64,000 bases of DNA from NCBI GenBank assembly GCA_000708835.1, contig DF237131.1, forward strand, positions 88,882 through 152,881. The letters run 5' to 3'. The position numbers were made by a program, and so were the translations under genes. The notes beneath the pieces were generated by a model, which was not told where the DNA came from, did no database searches, and was given only the letters and a program-made list of their open reading frames with translations. This DNA comes from Klebsormidium nitens (lineage: Eukaryota > Plantae > Klebsormidiophyceae). This document shows, piece by piece, positions 9,872 to 39,751 of the stretch (position 1 is the stretch's first letter; each line of letters opens with the position of its first letter).

Positions 9872-10428
9872 AGCTACCCGCAAGAGCATGACACAAAGTG
9901 TGCGATTTATATTTTGTTTGGAGGCGAACTCCTTCAAAGGTACAGAGAGGCAGAAGAAGCTTGCACATTTGACCGATCTGCCCGATCCTCCGTTAAGATG
10001 TGGTCGAATGATTGATCAGACACAAAGTGGAAGCTTCAGCTGGTTGGATCAATTGTCAGGGTAGCCTTCTGAACGATGAAAACAAATGCCTCGCTCAATT
10101 AGTTACTCGGAAAAACCAGAGCATTAGCCGCTAGCTGCCGTAGATCTAGTTAACGTGTTGACTGATCGAGTTGAACGAGTTGCTTCGCTGTATTGAAGCC
10201 GGATTAGGTACATCCGTGTCCACTACTTTGCTACTTTGATCATCCCGCGAGTGAGCCCGCAACAGCATCCACTGACAAGGCACTGAAAAGCTGAAAAGTC
10301 GTTTTTTGATGGCCTCTTGGATCTCCGAGTGTACAAATATACAGCGTTGGGGCTCCTCGAGGTCCGATACCACATGCTATCTAGGTACCACCCCGCCGCG
10401 CATATGTTTCGTGAATGCTAACCTCATG

Positions 10429-10448
10429 ATATAAGAGATCTCTTATAT
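10429..10448. repeat. Perfect 20-bp palindrome
   Basis: ATATAAGAGATCTCTTATAT. Confidence 0.9.
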
Positions 10449-11276
10449 GCCGCTTGATCGGACACATTCTTTGCATTGCATGAGTTTTGTCGGTATGACT
10501 TTTTTTTGGGCTGAGCTTAACGTTTCCGCTTGAAGTATGCACGCTTCACAGCAGCAGCAATGTGTGCATCTGCAACGTATACAAGTTGCGCGTAACCGAA
10601 CAGGTGACAGTTGCTCGTTTATTTTGGAGTATGTACGGTCACTGCCTATATCAATGCGGCACTAAACTGCGGCTGTCACATGCTCTGCCCCATACCGCAT
10701 ACACCGATTGCGCGCCGGAGCTAAAATACAAGCTGCGGCTCAGGTGATCATAATGATACCAAGTGACGAATATAATGTGCCGGGCCCATGTCGCTGGCAG
10801 TCGGCCCGGGCTTGGCCCGCCGGTTGCTAGCTTGAAGCAAGATAAACAACCAAGCCGGATGATCGGCTTGAGCCAGATCGTTGAAATTACTGCTGTCAAT
10901 TTCCATGCAAATAGATGAGAACTAGGCTAGGTGCTCACGTCTTCAAGCATGATAGCCCCATGACGGTCACTTGCTGGTGGAGCTTGAAATTTGGCACTGT
11001 GGCGCACATCTGACGCGATCACTCCTTTTGAATTAATAAAGCAATGAAATAAATCACGAGTCCACAATTGCAGTCTGCACCATGCATATCTTGCGGACAC
11101 TTATCATTGACGAAATAGGGCAGTCTACACAGTCTACTCCCGTGCACGAAACTGATCGCTCAAAGAGCCACTCTTCTCCAGACAGCTCTCAATTCAAGCT
11201 GGCCTTCACTGAATAGCAAAACAGTGGAGACGTATACATAATGAAGCAATTGCTTAATGCTTGATTTGACTTCAAT

Positions 11277-16322: not shown

Positions 16323-18604
16323 ATGGGGAAGAAGAGGAAGGCCGAGACCTCGGGGATGGAGGAGGTGGAGAAGGGGCTGTACTCGTCTTTCTGTGCGGCA
16401 GCCAACTCCATCTCGCAGCTGTATACCCAGGCGCAGAGTCAGCAGCGGCTCTCATTTGCGGCTGGCCAGCGTCATGCCATGGTGAGCTTTCAAGACTCTG
16501 AAATGTAAGTTTGACGTTAAGCTTTTGTTGCATGCTGAACCCTTCTCTAGGTCTTGGCTGAAAATACTCTTGACTGTGAAGGTATCCAGTAAGCAGGTTG
16601 GTCGGAGGGTTTGAGACCAAGCGGCCTGAGTGTCCCTTGTCTGTGTTGTTGAGAGGCTCTCCTCGTGCCACACGTGCCCTTTAAGTGGTCCATTCCTTGC
16701 TGCAATGTGACAGATTTGGAGGATCACTCTTAACAGGGTTCATCCATTTTCACTGTTTTGTCACTGACCTGCTGGACAAGTGAATGGGCGTCCCTTGGGT
16801 TGCATGACATAGCCCATTGGGGTTTCAGCTGCACTTGGCAAATAAGAAATGGGTCACTGAAAGCTGAAATGAAGGAAGCTGCTACTATTGAACGGGGTTC
16901 CTAAGGCACTCGCTGAGTACGGTTTGGCCTATGGCCTGGATTGCGTTGGTGGTTGAAAGCTGAGGCAACCAACAGGTTGTTTGGAACTCATGCAGAACCT
17001 TTCATGCAGTTCAAGCGGTGTAACATGACCACTGACCTCTTCCGAGCTTTGCTGACCTTTGTCAATCTTCCCATTGCTCTTCTTAAATACTCCTGTTCAA
17101 GTCGATCACACCTACACGCGGCACCAATGTTGCGCAGCTGGTTGTAGTCCGCCTGCATTTGGACGCCTCAAGTACTTCATTGTCACCTCCTTTGATATGA
17201 GGTCGAGTGACCTTTTCAGCAGTTTTCAGGTGCATTTTGCAATCTGGCATGCAGCGCGGATACTCCCCCTGAGCAGCTTCCCAAGTTCGTGCTCACGAAG
17301 TTTGTACGGGTGCCTGCAGGATCAAGTTTACCAATGGGTGCTCCGGCAGCGGGATGCAGGCGCCACGCAGCTGTCGGCCGATCAACTCCTCAACTTTCTC
17401 CAGGTAAGATACGCTCTCTGCGTAGTTTGGATGAGAAACTTTGCTTGCTTGCTTGCTCAGCACCTCAATGGATGGCTGTGGGACTGCGTATCGACCTTGT
17501 CCTAAGCTTGTGCTTCGTCGCCTTGTATGCCATGCATATTTCCATCTGTTCGTATGCTCCATTTGCGTATACTACTGTGGTTTCAATATTTTGTTAGGTC
17601 ATGCTTGATGGTATGCAACTGCAGTTCTTCGTTGCATTACGACCCTTACTTGGCTTATTGGTCCCTGAGGCAAGGCCATCTGACACACTCTCTTGCATTC
17701 TGACAGAGGGAACTAGACACGGGAGACATTGCCGTCTCGCACTTCAGCCAGCAAGCGGCTGCAGCGACCGCCCCCGCGCCAGCAGCATCCCCCCCCCCAG
17801 CAACTTCCATCTCGCACCATGCTCGGGTCCTGTCCTCCCACCAGGCTCAGGCTAGCGGCCAACCGCCTTTGCCGCAAACCAACTCACGGGGGGGTCACGC
17901 TTTCACCCCCCTAGACAGAAGCACGGATCTGGCCCTCATTGACAACAAAGCACAGATGTTTGGAGGGACGAGCCCTCAGAGGCGAGTGTTGGGTTCATTT
18001 GCGGGGCAGTGGACACAGGGTGGGGGGTACGACAGGGGCCGGGCGTCGGGGCCGCAACACCAGGGGGGGGCTGCACCTGGGATGTTTGGGGCAGCGACGG
18101 TGAGTGCTGTGGTCTGGATTGAGCAACTTTCTTTCTCCAGTGTCCTAGTCGAGTGATTACTTCCAAAGAAGGATGCTTATGAGTAGTAACAAATGGTCTC
18201 TGAAGTGATTAGGAGGGCCGGAATTTTTAGAAGCTGGTAAGAGTCGATTGTCAACGCATACTGGAGGATTCTTCTAGGCAGTCTGTTGAGTCTGTTGAGC
18301 CAGTGCTGGTGCTCGCATGTTCCAGACAGCAGCTATTTGGTACTTCTTTGCTTGGAGCGCCAGAGCTTTGCAAAGGTTGAGGGTGAAACTCATTGGCGAG
18401 TCGTAGGATCAAGCCTTGCGCATGGGAACGGATGCTTCTTATGCTGGGAGTTGTCTCACACTTCTGTTCGCCCCTTCCATTCATCTGCAGGCTGAGGTGC
18501 CTGGGGGTCTGGACGGGCATCAGCATATGCCAAATGGCGAACCCACCCAGGAACCAGAACAGCAGGGGGGTTACGGCGGGCCTGATGACGACTTCATGAT
18601 GTAA
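16323..18604 (+). CDS. HAPSTR1-like: HAPSTR1/TAPR1 (C16orf72, DUF4588)-like protein
   Basis: Exons 16323-16481, 17320-17403, 17707-18099 and 18491-18604, all phase 0 and GT-AG. MGKKRK..EVEKGLYSSFCAAANSISQLYTQAQ..SFAAGQRHAMDQVYQWV..DQLLNFLQRELD matches the conserved plant F..AA.SL.QLY family. Confidence 0.85.
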
Positions 18605-20273
18605 TGTAGCTGAACGGCAGCGTTTGCCGAGCAGGCCCTCATTCTTTCTCTCGGAGACGGCTGAAGGGACGCCATGTGAGGAGCAATAAGCTGTAGCACA
18701 ATCGAAGTCGGAGCCTAGCGACCTGTTAGAGCGCACGCTATATGGGCGACCAGCGAACCAGCATATTGCTAGGATTGCGTCCCAACTCAGGGACGTGCAT
18801 CCTGTTGTCAAGAAGGAAGGGCTTTGCTGTTCTCGAGCAATCTGCTCGATAGTTGCCTTTTCTTAGAGGGACAGGGGCTGATAAGCATGCTAACACGTCA
18901 CACTGTTCATCCGAGTAGAGAGGGTCAAGTAGTTTAGGGTAGTGGGTGTCCATATCAGCCCGTTAGCTGTGTCTACAACAGTCCGTGTTGCCACACATAT
19001 TCTGGCTCTGTGTTCCAGAGAAGCTGAACTCTTGATGCCAAGCACTCAATCGACAAGTCTTGAATCACGCGATCTCCTACGACGATCTTGGGACTGGAAA
19101 GCTCTGCAAATGTAGTCTGTTTACACGGAATGAGAAGTGAAGGTTCTCTCTCGAAGCACATATTGTCCTGCTAAGTTCTGAAACGAGGTGCTTCCATACA
19201 TGGCTTCTAACATGCCACCATACGTACTATGATGCAGTCTGACGGTCTGCTATGATGATAGTATGATTACGTTGTCTAGCATTCGCACCACCACGTCTAG
19301 GCGCCTTTGCACGCTGCCGCCATGACGGACCCAGGGGCTCACTTGTGGATCCCAGCTGGCCGCCGGCCTGTGCATGTGCCGTCTCGGTCACTGCAAACGG
19401 CTGTTAGCATGCTCACATGCATATAGTGCATTCGTTGTTATTCACATTTTGCTACATTGGACGCGTCGTGAAGCATTAATTTGATCATGAATGACAAAAC
19501 CGAGCTTAGATTCTCTGATGAACGAAGCGACAAGCTTGTTCGTCCGAGAGATCCACAATGTTGCTTATTCACTTTTGCAGCCGCCCAATTTCAAGCCTCA
19601 TGATGATGAAGCTAGAGAGACAATTACATCTGCGCCGCGGGCTCCGATTTACTACCCAATGCTCAGGAATTTTATAAGACCGCTGGGTCCATCTTGGGAC
19701 TCGAGGGCATTTTGCAACGCTTACAAAGGCGTGTCCAATCACCTAGTAGGCCCGTTGCCAATGTGCGCGCAGCATTATCGCTACACGAAGTCTTTGATCA
19801 AGACTCTAAATTGCACGATCGGGTCACTGACAGAGCTTAACAGCATTCTGAGGCTCTCTGCAAGTCAGGACCATGAGCAAGTCACGCATTGCTGTAACAC
19901 GCCATCCGGAGTGCAAACTCCCAAATTGGCCGAGTGTGCTACCAACGACTTCTTACTTCAAACACAAGCATGCAGCCGACGCACCTGGATCGTTCTCGCT
20001 TGCATCTTCCCAAGTTCACAATCGAATATATATACAACTCGGAGTTGCACCCTGTGCCATGCGACTTGGAAACGCTGAATCGCATGAGTCCACCTTCGAT
20101 ATACACATGAAGCTCATTGTAAGGCTTCCATTCATTGGCAAAACGTAATTTGAGAAGGTCTTTCGTACATGGTGTCAAAGAATTGCTCACTACTCTACAT
20201 AAGTGCATCCTAAGAACATGCCTTGGCCTCTTCAAGCATGCCTGTTTTGACTCTTGCGGCTGCTCTTACCACT

Positions 20274-23200
20274 TCAATCTACTTCGTACATCTGTAACTG
20301 CTGCCCTTGGAGCTGAGCATCTTGATCCTTCGGATCGGCATCTGCTGGCACATCTGCTTCTACAGGCTGCTCACAAAGCTCGATCAAGTAGCAAACGGTG
20401 TCGACGGACGCCGTCTCAGCTGCCTCGCTGCATTCCGACACCGTGTCTTCGTACTCTTCATCGTCTGACGGCAGGTTGCGCCTTTCCTCTTGGAACCTCT
20501 TGAAAGGGTCGTCGGCTTCCTCTTCTTCTGGCGGAGGGGGTGCTGAGAAAGGATGGTAATGTTCCATGAGAAGGGGCTCCTCGCGCTCTATAGCCTTCTT
20601 CTGCGGGCGGTCAAAGAATCCTTTCCTGATGGCCGACTGCGAGCTCACCGTTTCCTTATCCCGCGTCTCGAGCCCCTTCGCATTCCCTGTTCGCAGAGAG
20701 TCTGCCTCTGACTTGCTCTCCCTGAGTGCCACGTGTCGACTCATGACTCCCGTGCTCGTAGCTAGCCATCCCCTGCTCTCGTGCATCCGTCCGGATCTCG
20801 CATGGCCCCTCCAACCGTTACTCCCCGTTTCCTCTTCGTCACTGCTCACGTCATCTTCCTCGCCGCCGAAACGCCCTTCCAAACCAAAGCGCCCCAACTC
20901 CCAGCCCCGCGAGCCCCCAATCTCCTGATACTTCCTCCCGCTGGTGGCTTTGACGGCGAATCTCACCGTGTCTTTCACCGTCCAATTGGCGACCAGTTCT
21001 GATGCCAGCCTGTCTCCTTGTGTCGCCCGCTCCCTCAGCTCCTTGACCATGTTCATCTCCGCAGCCGCGACGTTGGCAGCGTCGGCGCCGCCCTTCAGGA
21101 GCCGCTCGCAGAGGAAGAACGCGCAGGGGTGCAGCGCGTCGTGCTCGAGAAACGCGCGCACCAGCTTGTCGTAGGCGGAGTGCCCCTCCATCGCGGCCGC
21201 GTGCGCGCGCATCAGGAACTCGCGCGCCGCGCGGTAGTCGCGGTGGCCTGTCCCCGTCTCGCTCGCGCGCAGGACGCGCTCGTGCAGAGCATCAGCGTCG
21301 CAAGTGCGCTCGAACTCGTCCACCATCTGCAAACGGATCTGGCAGGCCTCAGACGCGAGCATCTGAATCGACTGTCATTTCGGAGGATTCCTCACTGGGG
21401 GAGATCGCAGACAGTCTGTCTAGAGTAGCCTCAGAGACCCTGTGGGTAGCGCCGGAAATCCGGCGTAGAATACGGTTAGCAGGCATCCTCTGCAAAGAAT
21501 GATTATCTTCGCAGAATTTTTTTTTGATGGCAAACAGAGGTACGAGAAATTTAAGAGAATTGGGCCGAAGATTCATTACTCCTCAAGTAGTACCATAACA
21601 AGGACTCTTGTCGGCTCGAATCGTGACCCCTTGCTTCTCGATCATCCGAAAAATGCAGAAGACAGTGCTCGCACGCTAGAAGAGACGTCTGATCCAAAGG
21701 ACTACGCAAACAAATTTCTTGATTATTTGCCACGTACCGACCGAGCGTTCGCGTCCCCGTAGACGTCCGCCCGCTTGTTCAGAAAGTTCAGCGCCATCTC
21801 CAGAGGCTCGCGGAGCGCGCGCGTCCCCGCCATCTGCAGCTCGCGCACCAGCTCACGCACCCGGGCATCCTTCGGTGAGCGCGCGCGCATCCATTGGAGC
21901 AGCACCAGAAGCAACAGTTTCGTCGACTCTTCATCTCCGGAAGTCACTCTGGGCGTCGGTTTGTGGGCTTTGTGGAGCACGTCCACCTGTGTGACGGCGA
22001 GTGTACGTCAGCAAAGATTAGGCATCAAACTCTGCACACTCTTGTGGCCAGAGAGTGAGTCTTTGCAGATTCGTGGCCTTGGCGTGAAAGGGTTTTGAAC
22101 AAGCAAATGAGTAGGCGAATCAAAAGAGGACTCGGCGAGTGCAGGCTTGACAGGCAGGAGTGGTGTTTTGATCTTCATGAAAGGATTCATATGGGTCCAA
22201 GGAATGCTTGGATGTTCCATTTAGAACGAATTGTATTGAGAAAGTGATTGTATACAGTCCTTCCAAAAGATGACAATACGGAACATACAGAGAGTTTGCA
22301 GACAAGGTGCTACACTATACTCAGAGAGCTCACCAATTGGCCGAAGCAGTCTTCTACATCCTCGTTTTTGGGTTTGAGCCGTTGGACATCCTTCTCCATG
22401 ACAGATAAAATTCTGCAGGAACACATATTTTCTTCAATGAATGCAAGGAGATCCAGGCAATGCAACTTAGGCAGCAGGCGCAGCCAAATGATCCTATGAC
22501 TAAGTTTCAAGATCATTCTGTCATCACAAAAAACGCTGTGCGATCCAGTTTCCTCCTTGATTCCTTCTTTATAAGCAGAGACTAGGAAATTTGTCCAGCA
22601 TAAGCTCAAAGAAACCAGCAAGCTGCTTGTCAAGTGGCAGAAGATCAGACCTACCGCTTCGTCCTGACCACCAGCTCGTTCCGTTCGTCAATCTTGGCGT
22701 TCCGCTTCGCGTGCTTCTTGCAAGAAGCCTCTTGGCATACATCCAGAACCTCCACTGCATCTTCGGTTTCCAACCCCGGGTGCGCTCTCAATGTGTCCCG
22801 TTCGATCTGATCCAGCAGAACTCTCACTCCCTGCGCGTCCCATTGGTTGGCCAGCACGTTGAGCTGCGTCAGCAGGAGAAGAGCCTGCATTTCCTGTGTC
22901 CTCAAGCGTCCGAAAAGATACTCGAGCACTGCAGACCGGAGCTGCATGTGCATCTTGCAAGGTTCTTCATCTGGGAGAAACTCGTTGTTGTCTTTCTCTG
23001 TCATCGAATCCCAGATCTTGATCAGCTTGTTGCGCAGCCCGATCGGTCCGCTCTCCTTCCTGCACTCCTCCAATTCTGAAAGCTTTCGTGCTGCAGCGCC
23101 ATCCCTCCTGCTTGCGTACTCCTCGAGCGTAGCGATCACGATGACGCCATGTATCGCACTTTTGACTTCTGGCATGTCTACCGCGAAAGATGTTCGCCGT

Positions 23201-24739
23201 GTGGCATCTTTTGAGTCTGGACGTGAGGCGCAGCCTACAGAAGCTTCCGATGCTCCGCAGCAGGTCCATTTCAGCCTGGCTCTGATGGTCTGTGATCTGG
23301 AACTGAAAAGGATGCCTGTCTCAAAAACCTCTGCATCATCTGCAATCGAATCAGAAGAAATAGCGAGAGCGTCTGCCTGATGCCGCAAGCTGCTCCCTTT
23401 GGAGTCAGCTTCGTTGTTTGGATCTTGGCTAAATCTTCGTTGCAATGTAACAGAGCTTCCATCGCATCCATCCTCCAGATTCTCTTTCAGCTCAAGTACT
23501 CCCAAGTGCACTCGTCCAAGCTTCGATCTGCTGTGATTGCAAGGACTGTAAGTAAAAGCTGCTGGAGCGTTGAGATCAGTCCGATTTGGAAACCCTTTCT
23601 GGCCACAGCAGTTGCTGAAGAAGTAGGAGGTCTGGAAATCTCTGACACTGGTGACCTTCTGAGGAATGAAGTCATGATCATGTGGAGCGTCCTTGATGGT
23701 CCTTCCTGTAAGACACATACATACTTCAGTGTTGATTGCCGATTGAGACTTTTTGGATGAACTTGACCAGCTGAACAAGCCACGCTTGCATTCGACACAC
23801 AAATTGATCCGAGGAGATTCTCACACAGATCCATCAAAAGCTTTACAACAACGCAAATTCAAAATCACCGTTCAGTAGACAGTGTGAACAATGTTAATTC
23901 CTCAGATCATTTTCTGAAGGTGAAGAAAGCCACAGTCTGTCCAGTCTGTCAGCAGAATAACTCTTTTGTAGGTACTTCAAAATTCTACATAAGTTTGGGA
24001 ACAAAAAGAATATGTTGATCAGAGCTAGAAAACCTGGCATGATTAAAATCACGGAGCAAGATGTAGTTGGAAGCTAACGTCGAAATCCACGTGCTCGCAA
24101 TAGATTCCCGGATCATTGTCAGATCATTTTCATGGGTGCTGATTTGATGAAATCCTTTCGCAGGGAAGCAGCTGTTTGATGATATCACTTCTGAAAAGTA
24201 ATCAGCTGAAAGTGCTTCTATATTGAGTTTTCCGTTCAATTTGTCGCTGATGCTTCATATAAGGTCCTCAAAAGTAACAAGATTTGCTCACGCAAAATCA
24301 GGCTAGAACAGTGCTAAAAGACAACTGAACAAATCTCGCCTGCGATGGTCCAAACATGGAGATCTGAACGGTGAGTACCTGTGTGGTAGTATCGGGAAGG
24401 CTTTCGGACCCCAGAGCCCGAGGAATCCCTCCTCATGCACTTTTCCAGGCCTGACCCTTCGTTCTTCTGAGGATGCTTCCACAGTCTGATCTCCGACCTC
24501 AAACCATCTCCTGTGAGCTGCAGCTTCTCCATGACGCCAACCTTTGCTCCCTTGATCATCATGCACGGACACCTCCGTCCTGCCTCTTCAAAACGCTCTG
24601 ATCCGCCTGCCTCCCGCCCAGCACTCTCTTCCCTCCCTCCCAAATTTTTGGATCTTGCTGATCTTTGCGCAGCTTGGGAATCATCAGTGCATCTCAAAGT
24701 TTTGTTCAGATCATCCAAATAGCAAGTATGCGCTATCAA
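20274..24739 (-). CDS. Hypothetical protein A with an unnamed HDF..NCCGQ..FTYxPCxHSRS domain
   Basis: In-frame GT-AG exon chain: (~24739)-24379, 23705-22655, 22412-22334, 21986-21738, 21326-20274. The 5' start is uncertain. Paralogous to the adjacent + strand gene. Confidence 0.7.
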
Positions 24740-25291
24740 ACTTCGTGGCCGTCGGATGAGTTACAATGATCAAATCCGGACCGTCGATTGTCACACCTTC
24801 GATTCTCCACCGCTCGATCGAGCCCTGATGGTCTAGCCTGGCATTGCATCGTCATCAAGTTATCCTTGTGATTTTTCGGAGATGTCGAGAGGCAAGTCGT
24901 GCTTTGTGCTTTGAAAGCGAAAGATGGACGAATCAATTTGCAGAGTACAAAGGTTTGGCCATGGCCTCTGCAAGGGCTGCGCTTAGTGTAGGCAGCTTTG
25001 GCAGATCCGATTGAGGCGCAAGACCGCTTGGTATCCAAGGTCAACAGCATGATTCCCCTGGCATGCATCGAAAAGACGGGAGGTTTTTGCACTCCTTGTG
25101 TTAGGGTAAAGATTGGAGAGGTTGGGAATGGAAGAATCTCTTTACAGAAGATACGTGACAGAGGCTTAATTCATCAGTCGATCGGCAGAAAAGGTGCATC
25201 GGTGTGTTGATACGAAAATGCTGAGGAAAAAAGCGTTCATTCAGATGCTTGAGCTTGCCAGGGTACAAAGTTATGAGACGGATCAGATTGA

Positions 25292-28200
25292 GTGATCGGA
25301 AGTCTTTTTGTGAACACGGAGGCATCGTGGCTCTCAGTTCGGTTGGAGAACGCGCATAGAATTCTTGACGTAGGGAGAGGGGAATTGGATTCAGCGATGG
25401 AGTTCAGTGAAGCCACTCTCAGAAGACGCGAGAAGAAGCATTTGAAACAACTAGGAGTTGCCCTAGACGTAGGTGAGTCTCGAAGCACAAGGTCAGAGAT
25501 GATTGCATCCAAGCCAGAATCAAAGCAAGGAAAGGTAAAGAAAACGACGGCGAACGGTGTTTCTCCAGAATCTGAGAGCAAGGCTGCAGCTGAAAAGCCA
25601 CAAGCCAAGTGCATGGAACAACAGCTGAGTCTTCTGCCGATCGATAAACACGGAAAAGAAACCCTAGGAGCTCTGCATGGTGGAAAGGGCGACCGCAAGG
25701 CGAAGCAAGCTTCTGGCACGGTCAGCTCAGTGGTCAAAGCGCCAGATGCGAGAAGAAGCGGGAAGGTCTTTGAGAGTCAGATAGTCCAGGAGGGTAGCAG
25801 GCAGCAGGAAAAGAAGGCTTTGCAGCTGAATGTCAAAGAGTCGAAGAAAGGTTCAAAAGTGACATCAGAAGCCATAAGATCTGCAAAATCCGCCAAGCAC
25901 ATCACTGAGCAAGCCAAGAAACAGAAGGAAAAGGTATGCACGATCCGCCAAGACGAGAATACTGAGGCGGTAAGGGCGGCGCAAGAGGGCAAAGAAGCCG
26001 CTGAGCTCTATGTCAAGTCCCAGGAGAGGCAGCTTGCAGGAGAACCTAGCCGCAAGGGCAAAGGCAAGAAGAAGCAGAGGAAGATGTCTTCTCATTCGAT
26101 GGAAGAAAAACCCGAAGAAGATGCGGGCAAGGATCTGAGCAGTCGAAGGACCCTAGAAAGTGCTCTGATGTCGAGTGCAGCCCCCTCATTCACCTCCGCA
26201 ATCCGGCTGGCAAAAAAGGGAAAGCTACAATCAAGCACGATCGGATACTTCTACAAAGGTGAGATTCTGAGCTTGAGCACATTCGATTAGGTAGTAGTCT
26301 CTTGCGCACTTCACATGGTAAAGCTTGATAATTGGGCTGGCTGAAGCAGTGATGCAACAAGCCATAAGCAGGGCTGCAGCTCATTGGCTGACGTGGATCT
26401 TATGAGATTAGAAGACCGAAATGGTTACAATCCTGGAGATAGAGAAAGGTGCATCAGAATTCCGGTCAGCGGCGAAGTTGAGACTTATTTCAGATGAGTT
26501 CGAGCATCCGAACATTGTCTGCCCGTCATGTAAATCCTCGTTTGCAAGTAATCCTGGCCCATTGGAGAGACTAAGAGGGCCATCAGAGCAGGCTTTAAGA
26601 ACGAGAAATGAATAAACTGTCTTCCTTCCAGTACAGACACCTAGGCTGGACTGAGGAGTAGTTTTAAAGTTCAAAAGAAGTGCGCTTGAAGATTGGTTGA
26701 ACAACTATATCAAGCAACTCTTTCGAATCACAGCAATACAGGCAAGGCACAGAGCACGTCCAAATATAAATACTGTGCCTCTCTTCAGTAAACCTTCAAT
26801 AGATTCTGGGAATCGGCAACGTACATTATCGAGATGAAAATTCGACATTAAATGGAATTGAAAGTGATCAGCCAGCCCCTTGATCTTTGTGCAGGGAAGA
26901 GCCTCGCTGAAGAACCCTGCAGCCACGATTTCGTGGCAGAAAAGTTCTTCGAGGGAAGCCTTTCGACGGGGCACACGGTCTACGTCTTCGCCAACTGCTG
27001 CGGACAGCTCGGATGGCCGCCACGTGGCAAGGATGCGGACTCCGGACCATTCACCTACAAGCCTTGCGACCATAGCCGCTCTCTTCCCACGTTCGCTTAC
27101 CACCCCGGTCACCTGCTTCCCAACCCTGCAGACCCTGGCTGTCGCCATGGTGGACACTGGCGCGGCCTGGCTGTGCGCGAGAGCGCGCCCGCGCGCTTGT
27201 GGAGCTGCTGCTTGCGGCCGCTCGGCGCGCCCGGCTGCGCGCGTCGCACGGACCTGTTTTTAGAGCGCCTGATCGAGAAGCGGCAGTTCCGCCCAGCAGG
27301 CGACGACGTGCCCCCCACCGACGAGATCTTCGAGTGCGCGGCGTATCTGACGCTCCTGGAGGCGACACGTGGCGACTCGTCCACCGCAGATTGGGCAAAG
27401 ACGGTCGTGCACGGCGTGGATGAGTGCTCAGAGATCGACTGGGAGGAAGGGCGGGAGCTGCTGAGACGAGTGCTCGCGGAGAAGGAGGCGGGGGGGCTGT
27501 CGGAAGACTTCTGGGTTCGCCTCGATATGCGGCTCAGAATGTGGGGCTGCAGGGCGGATCTGGCAGCGCTCGAGGCGGGGAGTCTCTTGCAGCTGTACCG
27601 GATCTCTGTCCTTCTTTCCAAGCACGACCGGCGACGCGCGGCCGCGCTGATGAAAGGGATGGAAGACGAAGGCGCGGCCGGCGAGCGCCCGGAGGCGCGC
27701 GCGTGCGCGCCCGAGAGCGGCGCGCCCTCGTGGTGCGTGTGCGGGGCGATCGAGGGGGATCCGAACGAGGAAAGGGAATTTCTGGAGAAGAGCGTGAAGG
27801 AGATCGAGAAGAGTTTGGACGGGGACGCGAGCACGATTCGAGAGCTAGAGCCCGATGAAGACACGCTTAAGGTGCTGGAAAGCCTGCAAGAGATTTGGAA
27901 GACGCTGAAGGGATCCCGCGACAAGAAGAAGATGGCGTGGCAGCACAAGATGATGATGCGGCGGAAGATCTGCCACCTGGTGGAGTGCAGGCAGAATTCG
28001 GTTGAAGCAATGGTAAGGCACCGCTTCTTTTCGAGGGAAAGCCTAAGCTACGACGACGGATAAGTATCAGCCGGTTTTTGCTTTGCGCTCTTCACTTTGC
28101 TTATTCAGGTAACTCTTTGTTTCTAAATTATCGCAGTCCTTTTTGGGAATACTGAGGAGCAGATTACGCCGCTAAATGATTTGTGAATCCGTCAATCACC

Positions 28201-31200
28201 ATAGAAGGTCTGTTAAAGGCCTTTGCGCGTCGGACTTCCCCGTATCAACTTATATCGTCCCTAAAAGGGTGGGAAGAAAGGGCCTAAGTCGATTCGACCA
28301 GTCGAGATTTTGACGAGGCTGAATCACTTATAAAGAATGGATAAACATCTCAAAACCTAAAAGTGAACCTTGACTCTCCGCTTTTCTTTCAAAAAGATGT
28401 TCACATTCTGATTCGGCAGGAATTTTCAATTCTGCTCTCAAAGCGAAAAGGCCCATAGAAACGAACCCTCTACTGTACAAACCATATACTTCTCTTCACT
28501 GCTCTTTCTTTTCGAGGATTGAGCCGCCACATGCTTATTGCAGGGCTGCGAAGTGCGCTGCCTCCCCGCGTACGAACGCCCCACCGACGACTCGGCCAAA
28601 GAAACGGTGGTCGAACCCGACTTCGAGCCGCTGCTGGATTACCTCGTACTTCACGAGTACCTTGCAAGCTTGAGCACGTTGCCGGAAGCAACGAGCTTTT
28701 GTGAGGAGATGGCAACTCTCACGGCGGTCGCTGAACAGATGGAGTCGGAGGAGCTGGCCCAGATCATGCAGCCGTTGGAAGCGATGGCGCTGGCGGGCGA
28801 TGCTAAGGCTGAAGAAGTGAGGATTCTCAAAAGCTACCTCGCAACTGACATTTGAAAGCACTGTCTATTGGCTGTCTTGGCGTACTGCGGGGGCCATACT
28901 CTCAGACTCGTCAATTAATTGCACGCCCTGTCTGTGGCGATTCTTTGAGTACGCTGATAGGATCCCACCGATGAAAGACAGATCTGCCGGCTTAGGATGA
29001 ATTTCCACCATAAGAGGAAAAGAGGCTCCTGTAACGCCCTTTATTGCGTGAGATTCGCACCCCTATTTCAAACGAGAATCAGGAGCTTTGTGCTTGATCA
29101 AATTCAGAGCCGACTACAATCCTAAGACATCGTGGCTGTTGATTTGAAAATTTCATTTCAAAGCGTCGCTCCCCTTTCATCCGCAGATTTCGGATCATCT
29201 TTACCGGCACGGCATCCAGGGCCTCGCCTCCCTCGCGACGCTGTCGCACTTCTACGGCCACCAGCGCTTCGCCAACGACCCGCGCGTCGCGGCCGCGTTG
29301 AACCTGATCGGCGCCCAGCTGGACACGTGGACGTTCGTGCAGCGGGGCTCTCTCAGGCTGCTCGCGGCCGCCGCGCGCGGCGCGCCCGACGCGCGGCTTC
29401 GGCTCTTTGCGAGCGTGTTCGCGGGCGCGCCCTTCGAGGAGAGCGTGCGCGCGCTGCGCGGAGTATGGCGCGCGCTCCAGCTGGCGTCGGACGAGCTGTC
29501 GCCGCAGGTTATGTGCACGATTGTGCTTTTGGGGGAGGATTGGAATCTGGAAGGGGTCGCAGAAGTGTTGCTCAGAAAAGGCGAGGGATCGGAAGCGAGT
29601 GAAGAAGAGGAGCCGGAAGAAAGAGTTCAGGCGATGGGGCGCGGAAAGGAGCTGCCGGAAGACGGAAGACGGACGGAAGGCGGGGCGGGTACGGCGCAAA
29701 ATGCTCCGGTGAAAGCTTCTATCTCAGCCGAACATGCGGGAGGACCGTCCAACCCGATCAAGCGCAGTGAAGGTTCCGCTCTAGACTCCAGCGCGGAAAC
29801 GGAACGCTCGTCAACGGAAGGGCAACACGGACGCGCCGCGGAAAGACCGGAAAGCGTACCCCGCGCCGCGGCCGGCGAGGAGGGTTTAGGAGCGCTTTGG
29901 GAATTCAGCGACTCTGACATTGTCCAACTCCGGCTACTGACAGAAGTTTCCAACTTTGAACCGGTCGGAGCAATGGAGGAGGCAGTATGGGAGAAGCTGA
30001 AGAAGACGGCCTCGGGTTGGACCGAAAAGATGCTGGAAGAGATTTTCCACTTCTGCGGCCTTGTAGGACTCAAGAACGTGGTGAGTTGCTGAGATGGTGG
30101 CTTCAACCTTGTCGGAGAAGGGTTGAGCGATCTAGAAGCTTGGAAATGTTCAGAAGTGAGAAAACCTAAAAATTTTAACTTCTTCTATATGGGCGGCGCG
30201 TCCAGCAGAGTGTAATACGCACCGCTTGAAGTAGCAGGCTTAAGAGGCGCAAAAGCTCTAAGGGGTTCAAATAGCTGCACGAACCGACTCCTGTCCGTTT
30301 GAGTTTCTGAAAAGGTCTGTGAGGTAGGGAATCGCTCCACCAGACCACACAGAAACTGAAAAGCTGAAGATTTGATTTGAGGTCAGCTTCGATCCAATTG
30401 CTCTTCTTCAACGTCTCCTCAGACCCAAGGATGTCGATTCTCGGCGAATCCCGGTCCGTGCGTTCGATTCTTCAAGTTCAGTTCGACAGCAAGGGAAGAT
30501 AACCAGTGCTAACCAGCGCGTTCTGCAATCCGCAGAGCTTCTCGAGGGTCGCCGAGTACGTGCAAAGCGCCGGCGCGCGACTGAAGGAGGACGGCCACCC
30601 GACCCACCTGTCACTCCTCGAGCGCGCGGAGCGCATGTGGCTGGCCGCGCGCGCGCACGCGCGCGGGGGCAGTCTAGGCGCCGGGCGCACGCTGCGCAGA
30701 TTGTGCGCCGAGTTTCTCAAGAGTCTCGTAGAGGACATCGACGTGGAAGGGGGCGTGGGACCGGGGGAGCCCCCGCACGATGTTTTCATTCTCTTCACCC
30801 TGTTTGCGATGCTGCTTTACGCACGGGAACCCGAGAGTCAAGCGATCTGGCAGCGTATAATGCAGGCCCAGAGGGCCGCAGAACAGTCGGGGGTGTCCGT
30901 TTCGGAGCTCGAGCAGAGAGCGGAAAGGGGGCGGATGGAAGAGCTGAGGGAGGAAGCGGAAAATGAGGGAGAAGAAGAGGAGGAAGTTGGAGAAGATAGT
31001 GAAGTCGAAGCAGAGTCTGGGATTGAGGCGCACGCGGAAATCGAAGCCAAGGGTGAGATTGAAGCTGTCCGGCAAGTCTTCGATAGGGTTCAGTACGGGA
31101 TGGGAGCGGCGGGGTTTGCGGGGCAGAGCCACCTGAGTGAGTCTGACATCAGCAGCAATTACAGCGAGAGCAGCTGGCTAGAGTTCGTCGGCGAGGACGG

Positions 31201-31630
31201 CGGAATCCAGAGCCCGACGGAAACGGAAGACGGGGTTGGGGAAACGCCGCAAAGAGACCGGACGGAAACCGAAGGGAATCGCGCATTATTAGAGCAACTT
31301 GCCGCTCGGGTGGGTGGAAGACGGACGGAGGAACGATTCGGGGAGAGTGTAACAGAGCAGGTTAGAGCTGACGAAGGTGCTTCCAGTACGTCCGTGGCGT
31401 CGCGCTTGGACAGAAGTCTGAATTGTCGAAATGGTGAAGGTCTGAGGGTCCATGAGGCAGGGATTCCGCCAGTTGAATACAGCCTGGAGGATAGCGACGA
31501 AGGCCCTAAAAGCGGTAGTTCTCGTGCATTCTCTTCTAGGAGGTCGCGGCCGGCCATCCGGGTCGGCAGTGTTTGCAAGGAAGGAGGCGGAGCCAATAGT
31601 GTGGTCCTTGACATGGCTTCTCTCGACTAA
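25292..31630 (+). CDS. Hypothetical protein B (~1450 aa) with the same Cys/His domain plus helical and acidic regions
   Basis: Exons (~25292)-26258, 26895-28012, 28544-28816, 29187-30080 and 30536-31630 join five separate ORFs in frame through canonical GTRAG donors and YAG acceptors. The 5' start is uncertain. Confidence 0.72.
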
Positions 31631-33833: not shown

Positions 33834-36800
33834 TCACCTCGTCAATCTGGCCCAGCACCCCTGCCCACCAGGCGGGCTGCCGTCCTTCGCTCCCTTGTCA
33901 CCGGGGTGGTCCAGTGATTTCCTCGGCCGCTGACAGCTGGCGCACACCCAGAGCACCGCAGGCCTCCCGGGTTCCCTCCCCCGGTTGCGCTCGAGGAAGA
34001 GGAACTTTCTCCACTCGCTACCTTTGTCGTGCTCCTCTAAGAACCCGGTGAGCTCCACCGAGTCGAGGCCCTTCTCGCTGAAGTGTTGCATCTGGGCCGT
34101 GAGGTCTCGGACGGTGCTGGGCAAGCCCTCCTCGGTCTGTGGACAAACCAAGTGGATGTTTAGGCTTGACAATGATAGCAGGCTTAGTCCCAGTTCGATC
34201 CCGAGAAAGGGCACTGGTGTTCCGATCATCTCGAAAGGAAGCGGACTGCCAGTGTCGATAAACCGACAAAGGCAAAAGTTTTGATGCTTTTGGAAAGCAA
34301 TTATCCAAGATCTGGAAACGTAGATATATATAATTTCAGTCACATGTACCAGCACACTTCTAACGACAAGACTCTTCAAAGCAACTCGAATCGAAGCGAG
34401 TCCAGAGTTCAGGACCACCAGGTTCAACGGTTCACTTGGCGAAATGATTTGTAGCTTCTCGGCGAAAAGCCAAACAGCCTACAGTTGTCGTACCACGATC
34501 TTACACCACGGAATCATCCCGACCAGAGAAAGCTGTCAGCAAACGTGACGTAAGCCTACCGTGAGGGGCTTCTTGAGCAGCTCTACCACTTTGACGAAGG
34601 GAGCCACGGCCTCTCTGGCTCCCACGACGTTGCCAACGACGTTGGCTATCTTCCCGAGGGCGATCAGGATCGTGAGGGCAGATGCGAGCCGGTTGCCCCA
34701 CTGGGTGTTCCGGTGGATCGTGTACCCCTTATGGCCGACCTGAAAAAAGAATGAAAACTCGAGGATTGCGGGCAAGCTACCGTTGTACGTACAGCTGTTC
34801 AAGATTGCTCGCTAAAAACATGCTTTTCACCGCGCATGTTAACACAGTGTTGAACAATTGAATGAGAATCAAGAGTCACCGGTCCTATGTTGGTTTAGCT
34901 AACGAGATGGCGGAGAATTTGCACTGTTCAAGGAGCATGAATTCTACTCTTCGGTCCAAGTTCTTGTCGTTTCCGTGAGGCAACGCATCCTTCTGATCTG
35001 GACACACGAAATCTCCAAAACGATAATACACGACAATTGGAATCGTAAGTCTTGCAAATCCTGCAATTGACACACTCACGGACGAGCAAGCTTGCAAGGC
35101 CCACCTTTGCAAATTCTCCCCTAAAGGGATGAGTGTGGACGAGTGGAAAAGTCAGTCAGCTCCAATCCCCAAAAGTCAGGTTTTCAAATGCTCACCGGCA
35201 CGCGAAAGCAATTCTCGCAGAGAAGATACATGATCGCCGTATGCTGGAAGAGCTCCCGGCTCAGGAAGTGGTAACCGATCAGCAGGTACTTTTGCGCCGC
35301 CTGAACCAGACCCTCGTTGACCTCCGCTTCCAAAGCTTGGGTTTCCGTAGCGACGGTCTCGAGGACGTGCGACATGTCCTTCAGAGGGTCGGTGCGCGAA
35401 AAACCCGGCGAGATGGCAAAGGCCCGGGGCGTTCTGGCGGTGCTAACCTCCACCACTGTGTCGGCCACATCCTCCACCAGCTTTGCCAGGAACTGCAAAT
35501 AATCCAGGGCGTGAGAAACCCGTTAGTAAGTAGGTAACCGGACTTGCACTGACGGCTGGCGCACTGATGGCATGCTTTTGCAAAGCACTCGCTTTGATCG
35601 AGAAGGGCCGCGAGTTTTGAGTATCTTGCCAATTGAAGCCACTTTACTTACGGAACGGTTGGGCGGGTTAGCAATCAGGTTAAGACTCCACCTTTGGTTT
35701 GTGGACTTGCAGATTTTCGGAATTCCTTTTCTTGTGTAACACAATTCATCAGCTTATTCGCAAGATCACAGGTGTAAACACGCTAGGAGCTATCAAAATC
35801 TAGTCATGTACAGGTATTTGATGCAGGTATCATGTTTCAGACTTCGCTTAAAAAGGACTGGAAACGAAACTCAGCAAAGGATTACGCAAGCAAGCAACCA
35901 GCGTCACATTGTCAAACTAAAACAAGGAACGCATTGATCTGTATGGCTAGCTCGTCGTAGGGTCGCCTTGTGGAGTAGCTAATAAGATCTCTGAAAATCG
36001 AACGTCTGGCCGCTTGCTCTGTGGTCCTTTTCAGGTCGATTGGGGCCACAGCGGGTTGCATCGCCAGCATTGTGCAACAGATTTGGAAACATGGAGCTGC
36101 CCTGAGAAGCCGCCACTCATCCGCTACTGCCTTCCTAGACATAATTCAACTTCCTTCTGCCAGTCAAGCCTTCGCCCAATTATCTCACCTGGGTGGCATT
36201 GTCGAGCAACTTCGGAAAGGCCCGTTGGGCCCGAGCCATATCGTCCACAGACGACGCAATCCCGATCAGGGTCTCCAATGTTTGTGCATTGCTCAACGGC
36301 CCTGGATCCGGGGCAATCTGCTCCCAAGGCACCTCGGTATGGTCGCCGGAAGGGCAGTCGGAGAAGCCGCTCCTCACCACGCCCATGGCACCCGGCTTGA
36401 GAATCTCGCTTAGTATGGAGTAGGGAAGGGGAACAAAGCAGCCGAGATGTTCAGGGCATGCTGCGGAGTAGTGGATCAGTTGGTCGCCTCCAAACAAGTC
36501 CCTGTGCACCTTGATTGCTTTAAGGACAACCCGATCGATCACCGCCCATATTTCAGTGTTCGTGTTCTGGCTATCCCCATCGTTTTGAACGGGCTTACTC
36601 CCGAGGATGTCAAAATGGCTGAAGCCGTTTGGGTCGCCGGGATTGCGCCTCTGGATGTTGATGGACACGCCGTTCAGGTTTGTGAGTACCCCACCCTGCC
36701 ACCAGTGGCCGTCTTTTGGAGGCGCGCGTGTGCAGATTCCAGACTGCACGAGCACAGTCTCAAAAAACCCAACCGGCATGTCACCCAAGCGCCGCAGCCG

Positions 36801-39751
36801 CCAACCTCGAACCTGGTTCTCCCCACCCGGTTTCCACTCGGTCTCAAGGCTTGGGGGAAATTCCGGCCACTTAGCTGGGAGATACTTTTTGACGGAAGCC
36901 CGGTCTTTGCGTAGTCGGAACCCTTGATCGAGTACCCGAGCTTGAATTGGTCAATCAGACCCAGCACGGCCGCTTTGTCCCCTACCTCCCCCAATAGCTC
37001 GGGTATGAGAAACGTCTCGAGAACGCCTCTTTCACACAACTGAATTGCGGCGTCGCTGACTTTGGCGTTGGGATGCGACTTGTACCTGTCCGCAAGCGTA
37101 TGGTCGAACAGAGTGCCAAGGCACTCCCCCACCAGCCACGCCGGATCCAAGAAGACCTTGCCCCGCAACCCGTCCAACTTCTCAAAGTGAAGCACGTACC
37201 CAACTTCGGTCAAGTATCGAAGAGCTCCTGCGCTTGCAGAATCCTCCTGGGACCGAAACCGAGCATTGAACTCCTCCATGCTGATGACTCTCCTTGCTAC
37301 CACCGTTGACGAGCTGTCCGATTGCTCCAACTGTTTTTGCACTCCCAGGATCGCACCCATAAGGGCGACCCATGATTTGGGCAACCCGACCTTGAAGTTA
37401 ACTGGGTCGTTCGTTACAATAGCCGCAATATGGCCTTCCAGAGCGCGTAGGCTCGGGTCGCGACCCTGTTGCGATGTCCCGATCGAACTAACGACAAACA
37501 ATTCTTCGAGAAGGAGCGGGGCTGGCTGCCCCAAGTAGCGGTCCAGGTTGTCTACATCAAATGCCTCGGCAACACGTCTGACTTCGGTGTCTAGAGCTTC
37601 CTGTATTTTGCTCCGAACCAATTCAAGCCTTCTCAACGCTATAAGACGGTCAATCAAGTCGCCCTTGGTTCCAACAAGGATAAATGTGGCACCTGGAGCA
37701 ACCGCTTGAACGAGGTCTACTCGGGCCTGCACGAAATACACACAATCAGCCCATTAGGTTTCGAAGAGTACGGTCTGGACGGTCAAATATGGGCTCGCGG
37801 CCCCGTCAATTGAATCGTTTGTGCTGGTCGCATTGCTGCAAGAGTCTGCAGATAGAGGAGCTGACGTTTCTTATGTGAGTGTCCACAACGCATTGCCAAA
37901 AGAGTTGCCTCTCGCGGTGACTTCAAACCGCACTCCTCGCTCCTTGAACCAAACACAGACAAAACCAAACGAACCGGAAGAGACCAGTTGATGAACCAAT
38001 GACAAATTTTATCTAGTAGTGGACGTCGAAGCTATTATTCACAAGCATAGGTCGGTATAGCAGTTGGTATTGCTGAGTACGTGCCTTGAAACTAGTGCTT
38101 GATAACAGTCATGGTCTGTACTCAAGATGGTTTTCGAGAGGCCTCTCATAACTTGAAACGAATTTGTCAAGAAAATGCAAGGACCCGTTGCCAGATGCTA
38201 AGACTATTTGACCAAATGCGTAAGCACAGGCTGAGAACGAACCAGGGAAAATCTTGAACTCACATTGATCTCGTCTAGGTCGTCCTCCGGATCCTTGCTG
38301 ATGTCGACGACCAAAAGATAAAGGCAGTGCTCTTTGGTAAAGAAGAGCCGTTGCATTGCCCCATACTGTTTCTGTCCAGCCCAATCAAACGCCCTGAAGG
38401 TGACCGTCTCTTTCTCGTCCGCCACCTTCCACTCAATGAACCCCAGGTTGCCACCAACAGTGGTCGCCTCACCCAGAGATACGTCTTGCTTCGAAAGCGC
38501 CTTGAAAAGGCTGGTCTTTCCTGCCCTTGGCAGGCCAATAAACACAAGCTTTGCAAGCGCCTTCTTTTCAAGCCCTGAGGACTCGACATCCTCCAGCCAC
38601 TCGAGCATTGCCTGGACCCCTTGCAGGGCGACCGGCAACGGTGGGGATTGCAGATTCCTATTTCCTTTGCAGAGGAGAGTGCAGAGAGCGGGTGCTCTCA
38701 GCAGGTTGAGCGGCAGGTTGTGGACTTGGTTATTACTCAGATCAACAGCAGTGAGCCCTGACATGCCCCCTAGAGTTGACGCTAATGACTGTACGCCCTC
38801 GTCCCCAATTCGGTTTCCTTGCAGGTTTAGGTTGGCCAAGCCCACCATCTTCCTGAGAAACACGGCCAAGACACTGGCTCCTTTGTCATCAATCACATTG
38901 TTTTCCAGGTTCAAAGTGGTGAGCAACTCCAGCTTCTGCAACTCTGGGCCCCAGAAGACGGCAGCAGTCCCAAACTCCATTCGGAAGTTGCCCCCAACGT
39001 CAAGGTAGGTCAGTCGTGACAGCCGACCAAGTACAGGCGCCAGCACCACAGCACCTCCTGCCTCCAAGAAGTTGTGCCCAAGCGCAAGATGATTGAGGGC
39101 TCCCCCTGCCATCCCGCTCAGGATGCTGGCCAACCACGGAGCCCCCTTCTCTCCCATATTGTTGACCCCCAGATTCAGGGACTCTAATCTAGTCATCTTG
39201 CTGAGAACAGGGGCAAGAGCTTGGATACCACCGGCCTCCATCCTATTGTGGCCCAAGTCTAGGTTTGTCAAGCATGACAAGGCTCCCAGTGCAGAAGCCA
39301 GCACCCTCGCACCGGCAGCCTCAATCCGGTTGTGCCCTAGGTCGAGGGAGGTGAGCTTGACCAGCTTGCATAGCTGTGGGCCCAGCCGCCTTGCACCACC
39401 GCTACTGATTTCGTTGAACCCTAGGTTCAAAGCAGTGAGCGTGACAAGCTCCCCCAGCTTCGAAGCCAGAGCCCCAATCCCCGAATCACTTATGACAGTC
39501 CAGCGAAGGTCCAAGGTCTTGAGCATTGTCGCTCGCTCAAGCTCAGTGGCTAGTATTTTAGCACCCTCTTTGTCAATGCGGTTGCTTGCAAGGTTGAGGG
39601 TAGCCAGGTTGCTGAGGAGCTGATTGAGGCGAGGTCGCTCATCTCCCTCCAATTCCTCCCTTCTACAGACCTTCAACAAGAGGAAGACGGCTTCTGACTC
39701 TTGTCTCTTGCCAGCTGATGCAGGCAGGTTGTTGATTCCCTCTAGTTCCAT
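33834..39751 (-). CDS. Roco protein (RNI-type LRR - Roc GTPase - COR - TORNADO1-like C-terminus), with one frameshift
   Basis: About 12 LRRs of ~28 aa (LxxLxLxxNxIxxxGA), P-loop GLPRAGKTS, G3 DWAGQ, G4 GTKGD, COR motifs LPKSW, LTEVGYVLHF and VFLDPAWL, and C-terminal YLLCE and LWVCASC. Exons: 39751-38264, 37726-36189 (frameshift near 36890), 35492-35196, 34739-34560, 34136-33834. Confidence 0.88.

Follow-up and report, generated by a model that had tools for sequence, protein, structure and literature searches.

A pair of adjacent genes in Klebsormidium nitens shares an unnamed Cys/His module with a putative two-metal site

The gene pair and its exon chains

Two multi-exon genes, A on the minus strand and B on the plus strand, lie next to each other in the window, i.e., the whole 64,000-nucleotide stretch of Klebsormidium nitens DNA that was analysed, and are transcribed away from each other. 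When their exon-2 translations (22654-23703, minus strand, and 26897-28060, plus strand) were aligned by BLASTP, 26 of 62 residues were identical (42%, E 2e-14); together with the phase-1 intron that interrupts the same Gly codon in both genes, this 62-residue common block bears out the paralogy that had been proposed in an earlier, sequence-only reading of the locus. The two genes are also adjacent in two further assemblies, designated L002 and L001. The features at the locus are the following, a slash marking the boundary between exon and intron.

20274..21362, minus strand: last exon of A, acidic (pI 4.9), with the stop codon; modelled protein A about 873 aa
21738..21986, minus strand: next exon of A after the small one, basic and helical, 74% aa identity to L002; acceptor CAG/, donor /GTACGT
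22334..22412, minus strand: small 79-nt exon of A, deduced after AG...GT candidates had been enumerated in both species
22655..23705, minus strand: exon 2 of A, with the module at about 23194-23705, then a helical region; donor CG/GTAGGT
23706..24378, minus strand: intron 1 of A, GT...AG, phase 1 in a Gly codon
24379..24532, minus strand: coding part of exon 1 of A, from Met at 24532 to the first base of the Gly codon; donor ACAG/GTAC
24533..25396, no strand: divergent intergenic region between the start codons, 865 bp ATG to ATG, conserved with L002
25397..26258, plus strand: exon 1 of B, counted from the first ATG and ending in xIRLAKK...YFYKG
26259..26894, plus strand: intron 1 of B, GT...AG, phase 1, in a Gly codon homologous to that of A
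26895..28012, plus strand: exon 2 of B, with the module at about 26895-27260, then a helical region
28544..28816, plus strand: exon 3 of B, acidic
29187..30080, plus strand: exon 4 of B
30211..30230, plus strand: possible 20-nt micro-exon of B, tentative, needed for the reading frame
30517..31630, plus strand: last exon of B, acidic and Glu-rich, with the stop codon; modelled protein B about 1426 aa

The splice sites of the first introns were read base by base, and the coordinates put forward previously (24378-23706 in A, 26259-26894 in B) proved to be exact, with both introns in phase 1 within a Gly codon. In A, the last base of exon 1 (G, 24379) is followed by GT at 24378-24377, and AG at 23707-23706 precedes exon 2, which starts at 23705 and completes the codon as G/GA; the corresponding positions in B are G at 26258, GT at 26259-26260, AG at 26893-26894 and the start of exon 2 at 26895, the codon being G/GG. 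The acceptor ACAG/GA is shared by the A genes of L002 and L001, and the position of the phase-1 Gly intron is kept in all six genes of the three genomes.

The start Met of A (MEKLQL) is conserved in L002 and L001, and its exon 1 carries a strand-like motif, xIRLWK...RYYHTG, that is conserved with L002; in a more general form, (S/L)xI(R/K)LxK ... (Y/F)x(H/Y/F)(T/K)G, this motif is found in A, B and their orthologues. Exon 2 of A, which has 74% amino acid identity to its L002 counterpart, ends at the donor CG/GTAGGT, so that an in-frame stop at 22651-22653 belongs to the donor site. The 79-nt exon is predicted, as without it exon 2 would be out of frame with the exon that follows, and its translation is conserved with that of a 76-nt counterpart in L002. 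In B, the lack of a conserved Met in L002 leaves the start codon uncertain; exon 1 is Lys-rich (pI 9.95), with KKQK/KKQR clusters. The tentative micro-exon sits inside the sole conserved block of its intron (30193-30241). At the end of exon 2 of B, at about 27737-28012, a three-helix bundle was confidently predicted by AlphaFold2, and a fold search with it returned generic helical bundles only (Z<8), which is uninformative.

A and B are real, spliced, protein-coding genes whose exon chains were predicted from the DNA. This follows from the conservation of exon blocks with L002 while the introns do not align, from donors and acceptors that are canonical and conserved, and from dN/dS values that range from 0.09 in the A module to 0.67, being moderate to high (0.3-0.67) in most exons. 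A pseudogene or chance open reading frame, as well as an origin from a transposon or transposase, was rejected on the grounds of the conservation, the splice sites and dN/dS.

Layout and age of the duplication

In a tree, A and B formed separate groups with 100/99 support, and the duplication is thus older than the divergence of the three organisms. The pair occurs in two layouts, and lying head to head is not essential to it: in L001, the most distant relative, A and B stand in tandem on one strand. As the orientation of the pair thus varies, the origin by inverted duplication that had been suggested is left unsupported; a later inversion may explain the head-to-head layout, and a search around gene A for inverted repeats as traces of such an event gave no convincing case. 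To judge from the tandem layout, the pair also has no need of a bidirectional promoter, and the shared promoter of “a few hundred bp” that had been envisaged does not agree with the distance measured between the two start codons. The intergenic block had no Rfam match, and no counterpart of it was recognisable in L001. The flanking DNA available for L001 is likewise without a counterpart in the window.

Extent and residues of the shared module

The shared module starts about 25-45 residues upstream of the phase-1 intron, and its exon-2 portion is about 130 residues long in B and about 170 in A. The view that the common block belongs to no assigned family stood, but its extent had been underestimated, the module being longer than described: downstream of the block noted earlier, H-x-G-x-L is followed by W-(S/T)-CC-x8-C in A as well as in B. 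The order of motifs is HDF, NCCGQ, PCNHS, VHLG, a variable insert and WTCC-x8-C in A, and HDF, NCCGQ, PCDHS, YHPGHL and WSCC-x8-C in B. Invariant in all six sequences are the His of HDF, the CC of NCCGQ, the C-x-H of PC[DN]HS, the His of H-x-G-x-L and the CC of W[ST]CC. The final Cys is present in five of the six and is replaced by Asn in the B protein of L001; two contigs carry this protein, which makes a sequencing error less likely, and the replacement weakens the case for a second site of the strict C3H type. The A copy of L001 has frameshifts inside the module, which may mark a pseudogene or come from indels in the assembly.

In both genes, no other part is as well conserved across the three genomes as the module, and the lowest dN/dS (0.09) was measured over the first 62 codons of exon 2 of A. 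Two copies only, those of A and B, were found when all six frames of the window were scanned with the HMM. No homology between A and B was detectable beyond the module by BLASTP or by hhalign of the post-module regions (probability 0.8%); the “weaker second match” that had been noticed, L..IW...KM.M..R, is indeed present in the proteins, though without significance (E about 1 in BLASTP and the same hhalign value). Comparison of the two halves of the module with each other detected no internal repeat (hhalign probability 0.35%). An AlphaFold2 model of the module from the six sequences reached a pLDDT of 38, so that zinc binding and the fold stay at the level of inference; when the whole of B exon 2 was modelled with four rows, the module stayed below pLDDT 50, and confidence was confined to the C-terminal three-helix bundle.

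Searches for relatives

Database searches were made exon by exon and with the six module sequences. Pfam gave no match at E<=1 with whole exons and none above threshold at E<=10 with the six modules; no PDB sequence matched a single sequence, or the module profile at E<=10; and the ESM Atlas returned matches at noise level only (best scores 0.79 and 0.84). A profile search of 1.84 billion (1.84e9) representative proteins recovered orthologues (P0002, P0003 and P0007) and no other relatives, and none turned up when metagenome and viral contigs were scanned with back-translated motifs. The earlier placement of the shared block outside any described family is upheld by these searches, as is, within the databases searched, its restriction to one lineage, namely this alga with two relatives. 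By sequence, then, the module is a real but narrow orphan domain, unnamed, and found in two related organisms besides this alga.

The profile also resembles an unnamed metagenomic family of four proteins (P0008-P0011), in which a unit of HPGEL, about 45 aa and WxCCGxPGDAxGC is repeated two to four times in tandem. Each repeat aligns to positions 68-115 of the module profile (HPGxL...W-x-CC-x8-C) with identical CC-to-C spacing, and the N-terminal half of the module is entirely absent from them. The whole-protein E value of the P0008 family was 6e-5 in the library of 1.84e9 proteins; this is the sum of short repeats of 11-15 bits each, and in the same search three repeat proteins that are plainly spurious reached similar or better scores. 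The four proteins had no Pfam or PDB match, and a word search for the family led to four unnamed ENA entries only.

The module compared with known Cys/His sites

The C-terminal part of the module resembles a Btk-type or CHORD-type H...CC...C site, below the thresholds of either family. In an arrangement that recalls the Btk-type zinc finger (PF00779), an HxG is followed by an aromatic residue with CC and by a Gly-preceded Cys eight residues later, and this ligand order, H-x-G...W-x-CC-x8-C, is kept in five of the six sequences. The Pfam BTK model matched W-x-CC...GC weakly, with 11.8 bits and E 0.24 in P0007 and E 2.1 in one of the six members, against a gathering score of 24 bits. The module differs from Btk fingers in the spacing from His to CC, which is 36-70 residues rather than about 10, in the additional and unrelated N-terminal Cys/His half, and in its context, as no preceding PH domain was found by Pfam in exon 1 or exon 2 of A or B.

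The explanation that is favoured, and considered somewhat better than even, is that A and B descend from one ancient local duplication and share a single module, the Cys and His residues of which would bind two metal ions in a structural role, zinc being the likeliest. One of the two sites, the second, would work in the manner of a Btk-type/CHORD-type H...CC...C knuckle, its His and CC being separated by a long and variable loop. On this view, the module would provide long proteins that are helical, acidic and partly disordered with a small, metal-stabilised surface for interactions at their N-terminal end. A nuclear location of protein B is plausible in view of its Lys-rich N-terminal arm with NLS-like clusters; this location and the interaction role were both read from composition only.

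A closer tie to CHORD (PF04968; Rar1, CHORDC1, melusin, Rex3/REXO1) was also weighed, i.e., that the module is a true but highly divergent CHORD made of tandem Btk-type fingers, homologous to the Hsp90/Sgt1-binding modules of Rar1 and CHORDC1 and working as a co-chaperone adaptor. In the literature (PMC12129344 and its reference 54), CHORD is described as two C3H zinc motifs and is linked to Btk-type fingers. The algal module is likewise bipartite and could hold two metal ions, and two H...CC...C sets can be drawn in it, HDF/NCCGQ/PC and HxG/WxCC/GC. The YHPG, WSCC and GC of the B copies moreover resemble the consensus of the C-terminal half of CHORD. These likenesses are set against a length of 130-170 residues in exon 2, two to three times the roughly 60 of CHORD, so that the two drawable sets span 110-160 residues, where CHORD fits its two C3H sites into about 60. 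The N-terminal half, HDF...NCCGQxG[FW]P...F[TA]YxxC[DN]HSRS, is foreign to CHORD, the A copies have VHLG and not YHPG, the two halves show no detectable repeat, and neither a tandem CHORD plus CS architecture nor a CS or Sgt1-like partner domain was seen. With no CHORD match in Pfam and no Rar1 or CHORDC1 chain in the PDB with the profile (both at E<=10), the CHORD reading is considered rather unlikely. The SWIM-type zinc finger (PF04434), to which the block had been likened and which would carry with it a possible derivation from a transposase, fares far worse. Both have a C...C...CxH-like ligand order within one stretch, and the CC-x21-C-x-H of the module superficially recalls CxC-xn-CxH. 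All six sequences have adjacent cysteines (NCCGQ), then x19-21 and C-x-H, with CxC absent, and the further invariant residues (H, CC, CxH, H, CC, C in all) reach beyond a SWIM-sized unit. No SWIM profile matched at E<=1 (whole exons) or E<=10 (six modules), nor did a transposase family match any exon. There is no transposase or MEKK/SWI2 context, and the two copies of the window have a conserved gene context and conserved introns, with no repeats or terminal inverted repeats; the SWIM reading is therefore rated as highly improbable.

That the conserved Cys and His residues bind no zinc, and serve instead to coordinate an iron-sulfur cluster or to make disulfides of a redox-active or structural kind, would fit adjacent CC pairs occurring twice and nine conserved Cys/His residues in all. 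It is improbable, as Cys3His-type sets and HPG...WxCC...GC are typical of structural zinc sites such as those of Btk and CHORD, no known Fe-S family was matched in Pfam, and the proteins, being acidic or Lys-rich, are most likely intracellular, where disulfides are unusual. The block might also be left over from a partial duplication or from exon shuffling, devoid of specific function, in fast-evolving and largely disordered genes; the missing A/B homology outside the module, the dN/dS of 0.3-0.67 in most exons and the frameshifted A copy of L001 would all agree with this. The strong conservation of the module in three genomes with its invariant Cys and His residues, the low dN/dS in A and the retention of both paralogues since before the three lineages split make a functionless remnant quite improbable.

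The favoured reading, a shared module with a putative two-metal site, can be carried further, to a speculative version held to be possible yet unlikely. The module would represent an undescribed two-metal fold in which a new N-terminal H/CC/CxH half is joined to a long-loop Btk-like knuckle. Its second half would found a wider HPGxL...WxCC-x8-C class, occurring also as tandem repeats in uncultured eukaryotes and linking Btk fingers, CHORD and orphans, and the adjacent paralogues might act together, e.g., as a heterodimer via their helical parts.

Significance

The practical importance of the finding is limited because the family is tiny and has no tie to any major open question. As an orphan domain in a streptophyte-type alga, the module is nevertheless a clean case, and it comes with a comparative data set that is ready for use (three genomes with two paralogues each, one conserved intron position and two orientations of the genes). 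Should it bind zinc, the module would constitute a new family among the structural modules built on Cys and His, and its second half would suggest that current family models underrate both the spread and the variability of Btk/CHORD-like knuckles.

Gene models and the shared module

Genes A and B, the paralogues that lie head to head in the window, are a real and ancient pair that carries a lineage-restricted, unnamed Cys/His module. Both exon chains are predicted models inferred from sequence, and the database searches and folding were run on separate exons.

Predicted exons of the two genes
Gene A, minus strand, about 873 aa: 24532–24379, 23705–22655, 22412–22334, 21986–21738, 21362–20274
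Gene B, plus strand, about 1426 aa: 25397–26258, 26895–28012, 28544–28816, 29187–30080, 30211–30230, 30517–31630

The stop right after A exon 2 belongs to a conserved donor (CG/GTAGGT in the window and CG/GTGAGA in the relatives, the slash marking the exon end), and an additional exon is then needed ahead of 21986 to keep the frame; the candidate for it, 79 nt at 22334–22412, has a conserved 76-nt counterpart in L002, the contig of one relative. The 20-nt micro-exon of B (30211–30230), within the sole conserved block of its intron, is tentative. All three genomes share the Met at which A starts (MEKLQL, 24532), which places the module at the very N-terminus of A. The start codon of B is uncertain, and in its model an arm rich in Lys and about 290 residues long (pI 9.95, with KKQK/KKQR clusters) precedes the module. 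The C-terminal exons of both genes are acidic (pI 4.1–5.1).

The block that the sequence-only reading had found in both genes was recovered by BLASTP of the exon-2 translations (26/62 identities, 42%, E 2e-14), and its exon-1 motif was confirmed in both. A phase-1 intron in the same Gly codon, also claimed there, was verified base by base with coordinates exactly as proposed. In A, exon 1 closes with the G at 24379 and the intron opens with GT; its acceptor AG occupies 23707–23706 and exon 2 starts at 23705, the codon being split as G/GA; in B, the corresponding G is at 26258, again followed by GT, the AG is at 26893–26894 and exon 2 starts at 26895, with the codon split as G/GG. The module extends beyond the block first described: past C-x-HSRS comes H-x-G-x-L, as YHPGHL in B and as VHLGVL in A; a variable loop (B, about 36 residues; A, about 70) then leads to W-(S/T)-CC-x8-C, which closes the module. 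Outside it, an all-against-all BLASTP of A and B exons gave nothing below E about 0.1, and the post-module regions, compared with three orthologues per side, reached an hhalign probability of 0.8%; either the two genes have diverged past recognition there, or only the 5′ part was duplicated.

Relatives, age and selection

In a word search, B exon 2 matched two proteins: one at 69% identity from the Logan assembly of SRR23617307, the other at 44% from JGI metagenome 3300060285. Their contigs, L002 and L001 respectively, both carry A and B (tblastn with all exons). In all six genes the acceptor AG is followed by G(A/G) and preceded by a pyrimidine-rich stretch, and the donor context is (Y/F)x(H/Y/F)(T/K)G followed by GT, so the phase-1 Gly intron predates the three organisms. 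The maximum-likelihood tree of the six modules sets A apart from B (support 100/99), and identity to the window B module is 76% and 54% for the B orthologues and only 33–37% for the A copies; the duplication is old.

When the window was compared with L002 by blastn, only exon-sized blocks and the intergenic spacer aligned, and the introns did not. Donors and acceptors are canonical and in the same places, and dN/dS was 0.09 in the opening 62 codons of the A module, against 0.29–0.67 elsewhere, a pattern indicating real genes under purifying selection, with most of their length fast-evolving. In the same comparison, dS in the B module (window 26897–27088) was unusually low (0.23, when the A module has 0.69 and the other exons 0.43–0.69), which hints at nucleotide-level constraint or at chance in a 62-codon sample. 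The L001 A orthologue (L001:2661–3170, plus strand) has two frame changes inside the Cys/His module, to +1 after HDFIPQKV and back before WSCC, either because this copy is decaying or because the assembly has indels.

Search for a known family

No exon of A or B matched Pfam at E ≤ 1. With the six module sequences at E ≤ 10, neither SWIM nor CHORD appeared; the sole relevant line was the BTK motif, which matched one member at E 2.1 and the L002 A protein at E 0.24 (11.8 bits, below the 24-bit cut-off), in the stretch W-x-CC...GC. The proposed SWIM-like site was given up, and a transposon origin of the module was likewise rejected. Among PDB sequences neither a single sequence nor a profile found anything meaningful, and the ESM Atlas returned neighbours at noise level only.

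Since the claim of a lineage-specific family rests on the absence of relatives, a profile of the six modules was run against 1.84 billion representative proteins. Seven matches were obtained at E ≤ 0.001: three orthologues (P0002, L001 B; P0003, L001 A; P0007, L002 A), three artefacts in which RCC1-like and cadherin-like repeats summed weak matches, and the metagenomic repeat protein P0008. Scanning JGI metagenome and viral contigs with back-translated motifs revealed no further loci. In the databases searched, no relative of the module's N-terminal half (HDF ... NCCGQxG[FW]P ... F[TA]YxxC[DN]HSRS) was thus detectable outside a small lineage, and the claim of an unnamed, lineage-specific family held.

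AlphaFold2 gave a pLDDT of 38 for the module with the six-sequence alignment and below 50 for it when all of B exon 2 was modelled (4 rows). Within that exon, the sole confident part is a predicted three-helix bundle (residues 281–373, about 27737–28012, plus strand, pLDDT 83–94), which contains the weak match to gene A (L..IW...KM.M..R). A fold search with it found only generic helical bundles (Z<8); it could be a dimerisation element.

Likeness to Btk and CHORD fingers

P0008 and three relatives (P0008–P0011, from ENA metagenome assemblies) consist of 2–4 tandem repeats of HPGEL, about 45 residues and WxCCGxPGDAxGC, and have no Pfam match, PDB match or source name. Each repeat aligns to module profile positions 68–115 (H-P-G-x-L ... 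W-x-CC-x8-C) with identical CC-to-C spacing. The ligands follow the order of the Btk-type zinc finger (His, Cys-Cys, Cys), and the family looks like an undescribed Btk-like zinc-knuckle repeat. CHORD is itself built from two C3H zinc motifs (PMC12129344). A link between CHORD and the Btk-type finger is credited to Kaur and Subramanian (2018), as cited (reference 54) in PMC12129344.

At the level of pattern only, two H/CC/C sets can be drawn in the module, H(HDF)/CC(NCCGQ)/C(PC) and H(HxG)/CC(WxCC)/C(GC); the His of C-x-H falls in neither set. Compared with each other, the halves gave no sign of an internal repeat (hhalign probability 0.35%). The module has no match to CHORD profiles and is two to three times longer than CHORD, and its last Cys is Asn in L001 B, a protein recorded on two contigs; it was therefore filed in neither the Btk nor the CHORD family. 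That its second half works like a Btk/CHORD knuckle has a moderate probability, and the module most likely binds zinc.

Arrangement and neighbourhood

The DNA of the window is eukaryotic; its GC content is near 52% and its genes have several exons. Two neighbours of the pair are consistent with a flagellate-capable eukaryote.

Neighbouring genes in the window
1811–3943, minus strand: DUF4457 (KIAA0556-type ciliary protein) exon
36677–39751, minus strand: ROCO-type (LRR-Roc-COR) gene; LRR and Roc GTPase present, COR-A matched only weakly and below threshold (30.1 vs 35.3 bits)

No other gene piece near the pair is nearly as well conserved as an ORF at 17704–18153 (window 17598–18600, plus strand), whose protein is 92% identical to L002:138–791 and has no Pfam match.

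A and B are head to head in L002 as in the window, where their ATGs are 865 bp apart. The spacer (24555–25348) aligns to L002 within one blastn block (70.5% identity), with several near-perfect blocks at about 24740–25090, and has no Rfam match. Because it is constrained like coding sequence yet its translation is poorly conserved (41% amino acid identity), it is probably UTR or regulatory DNA. In L001, A (about 1764–6331) and B (about 8367–13586) are on the same strand, A upstream; the spacer has no recognisable counterpart there, and the rest of the available 20.8 kb of L001 has no match to the 64-kb window. The adjacency of A and B thus survived and their orientation did not. Of the common promoter suggested earlier, the part that stands is a conserved spacer fitting a common regulatory region in the window and L002; the tandem layout of L001 argues against an essential bidirectional promoter. 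It also argues against any need for the inverted duplication once invoked: a tandem duplication after which one copy was inverted is no less likely, and either layout may be the ancestral one. No inverted repeats marking an inversion were found.

About 4 kb downstream of gene B, L001 carries an intron-less 857-aa ORF (17394–19967, plus strand) with AEP_C962R primase (E 2e-51), PriCT-2 and D5_N domains. Giant viruses and related elements have primase-helicases of this type, so the ORF may mark an integrated viral element in that alga.

The retained adjacency lends mild support to a functional link between A and B. The favoured reading, leaned towards rather than firmly held and less sure in its functional part, is that these long acidic and helical proteins, probably nuclear, would bear a metal-stabilised interaction module.
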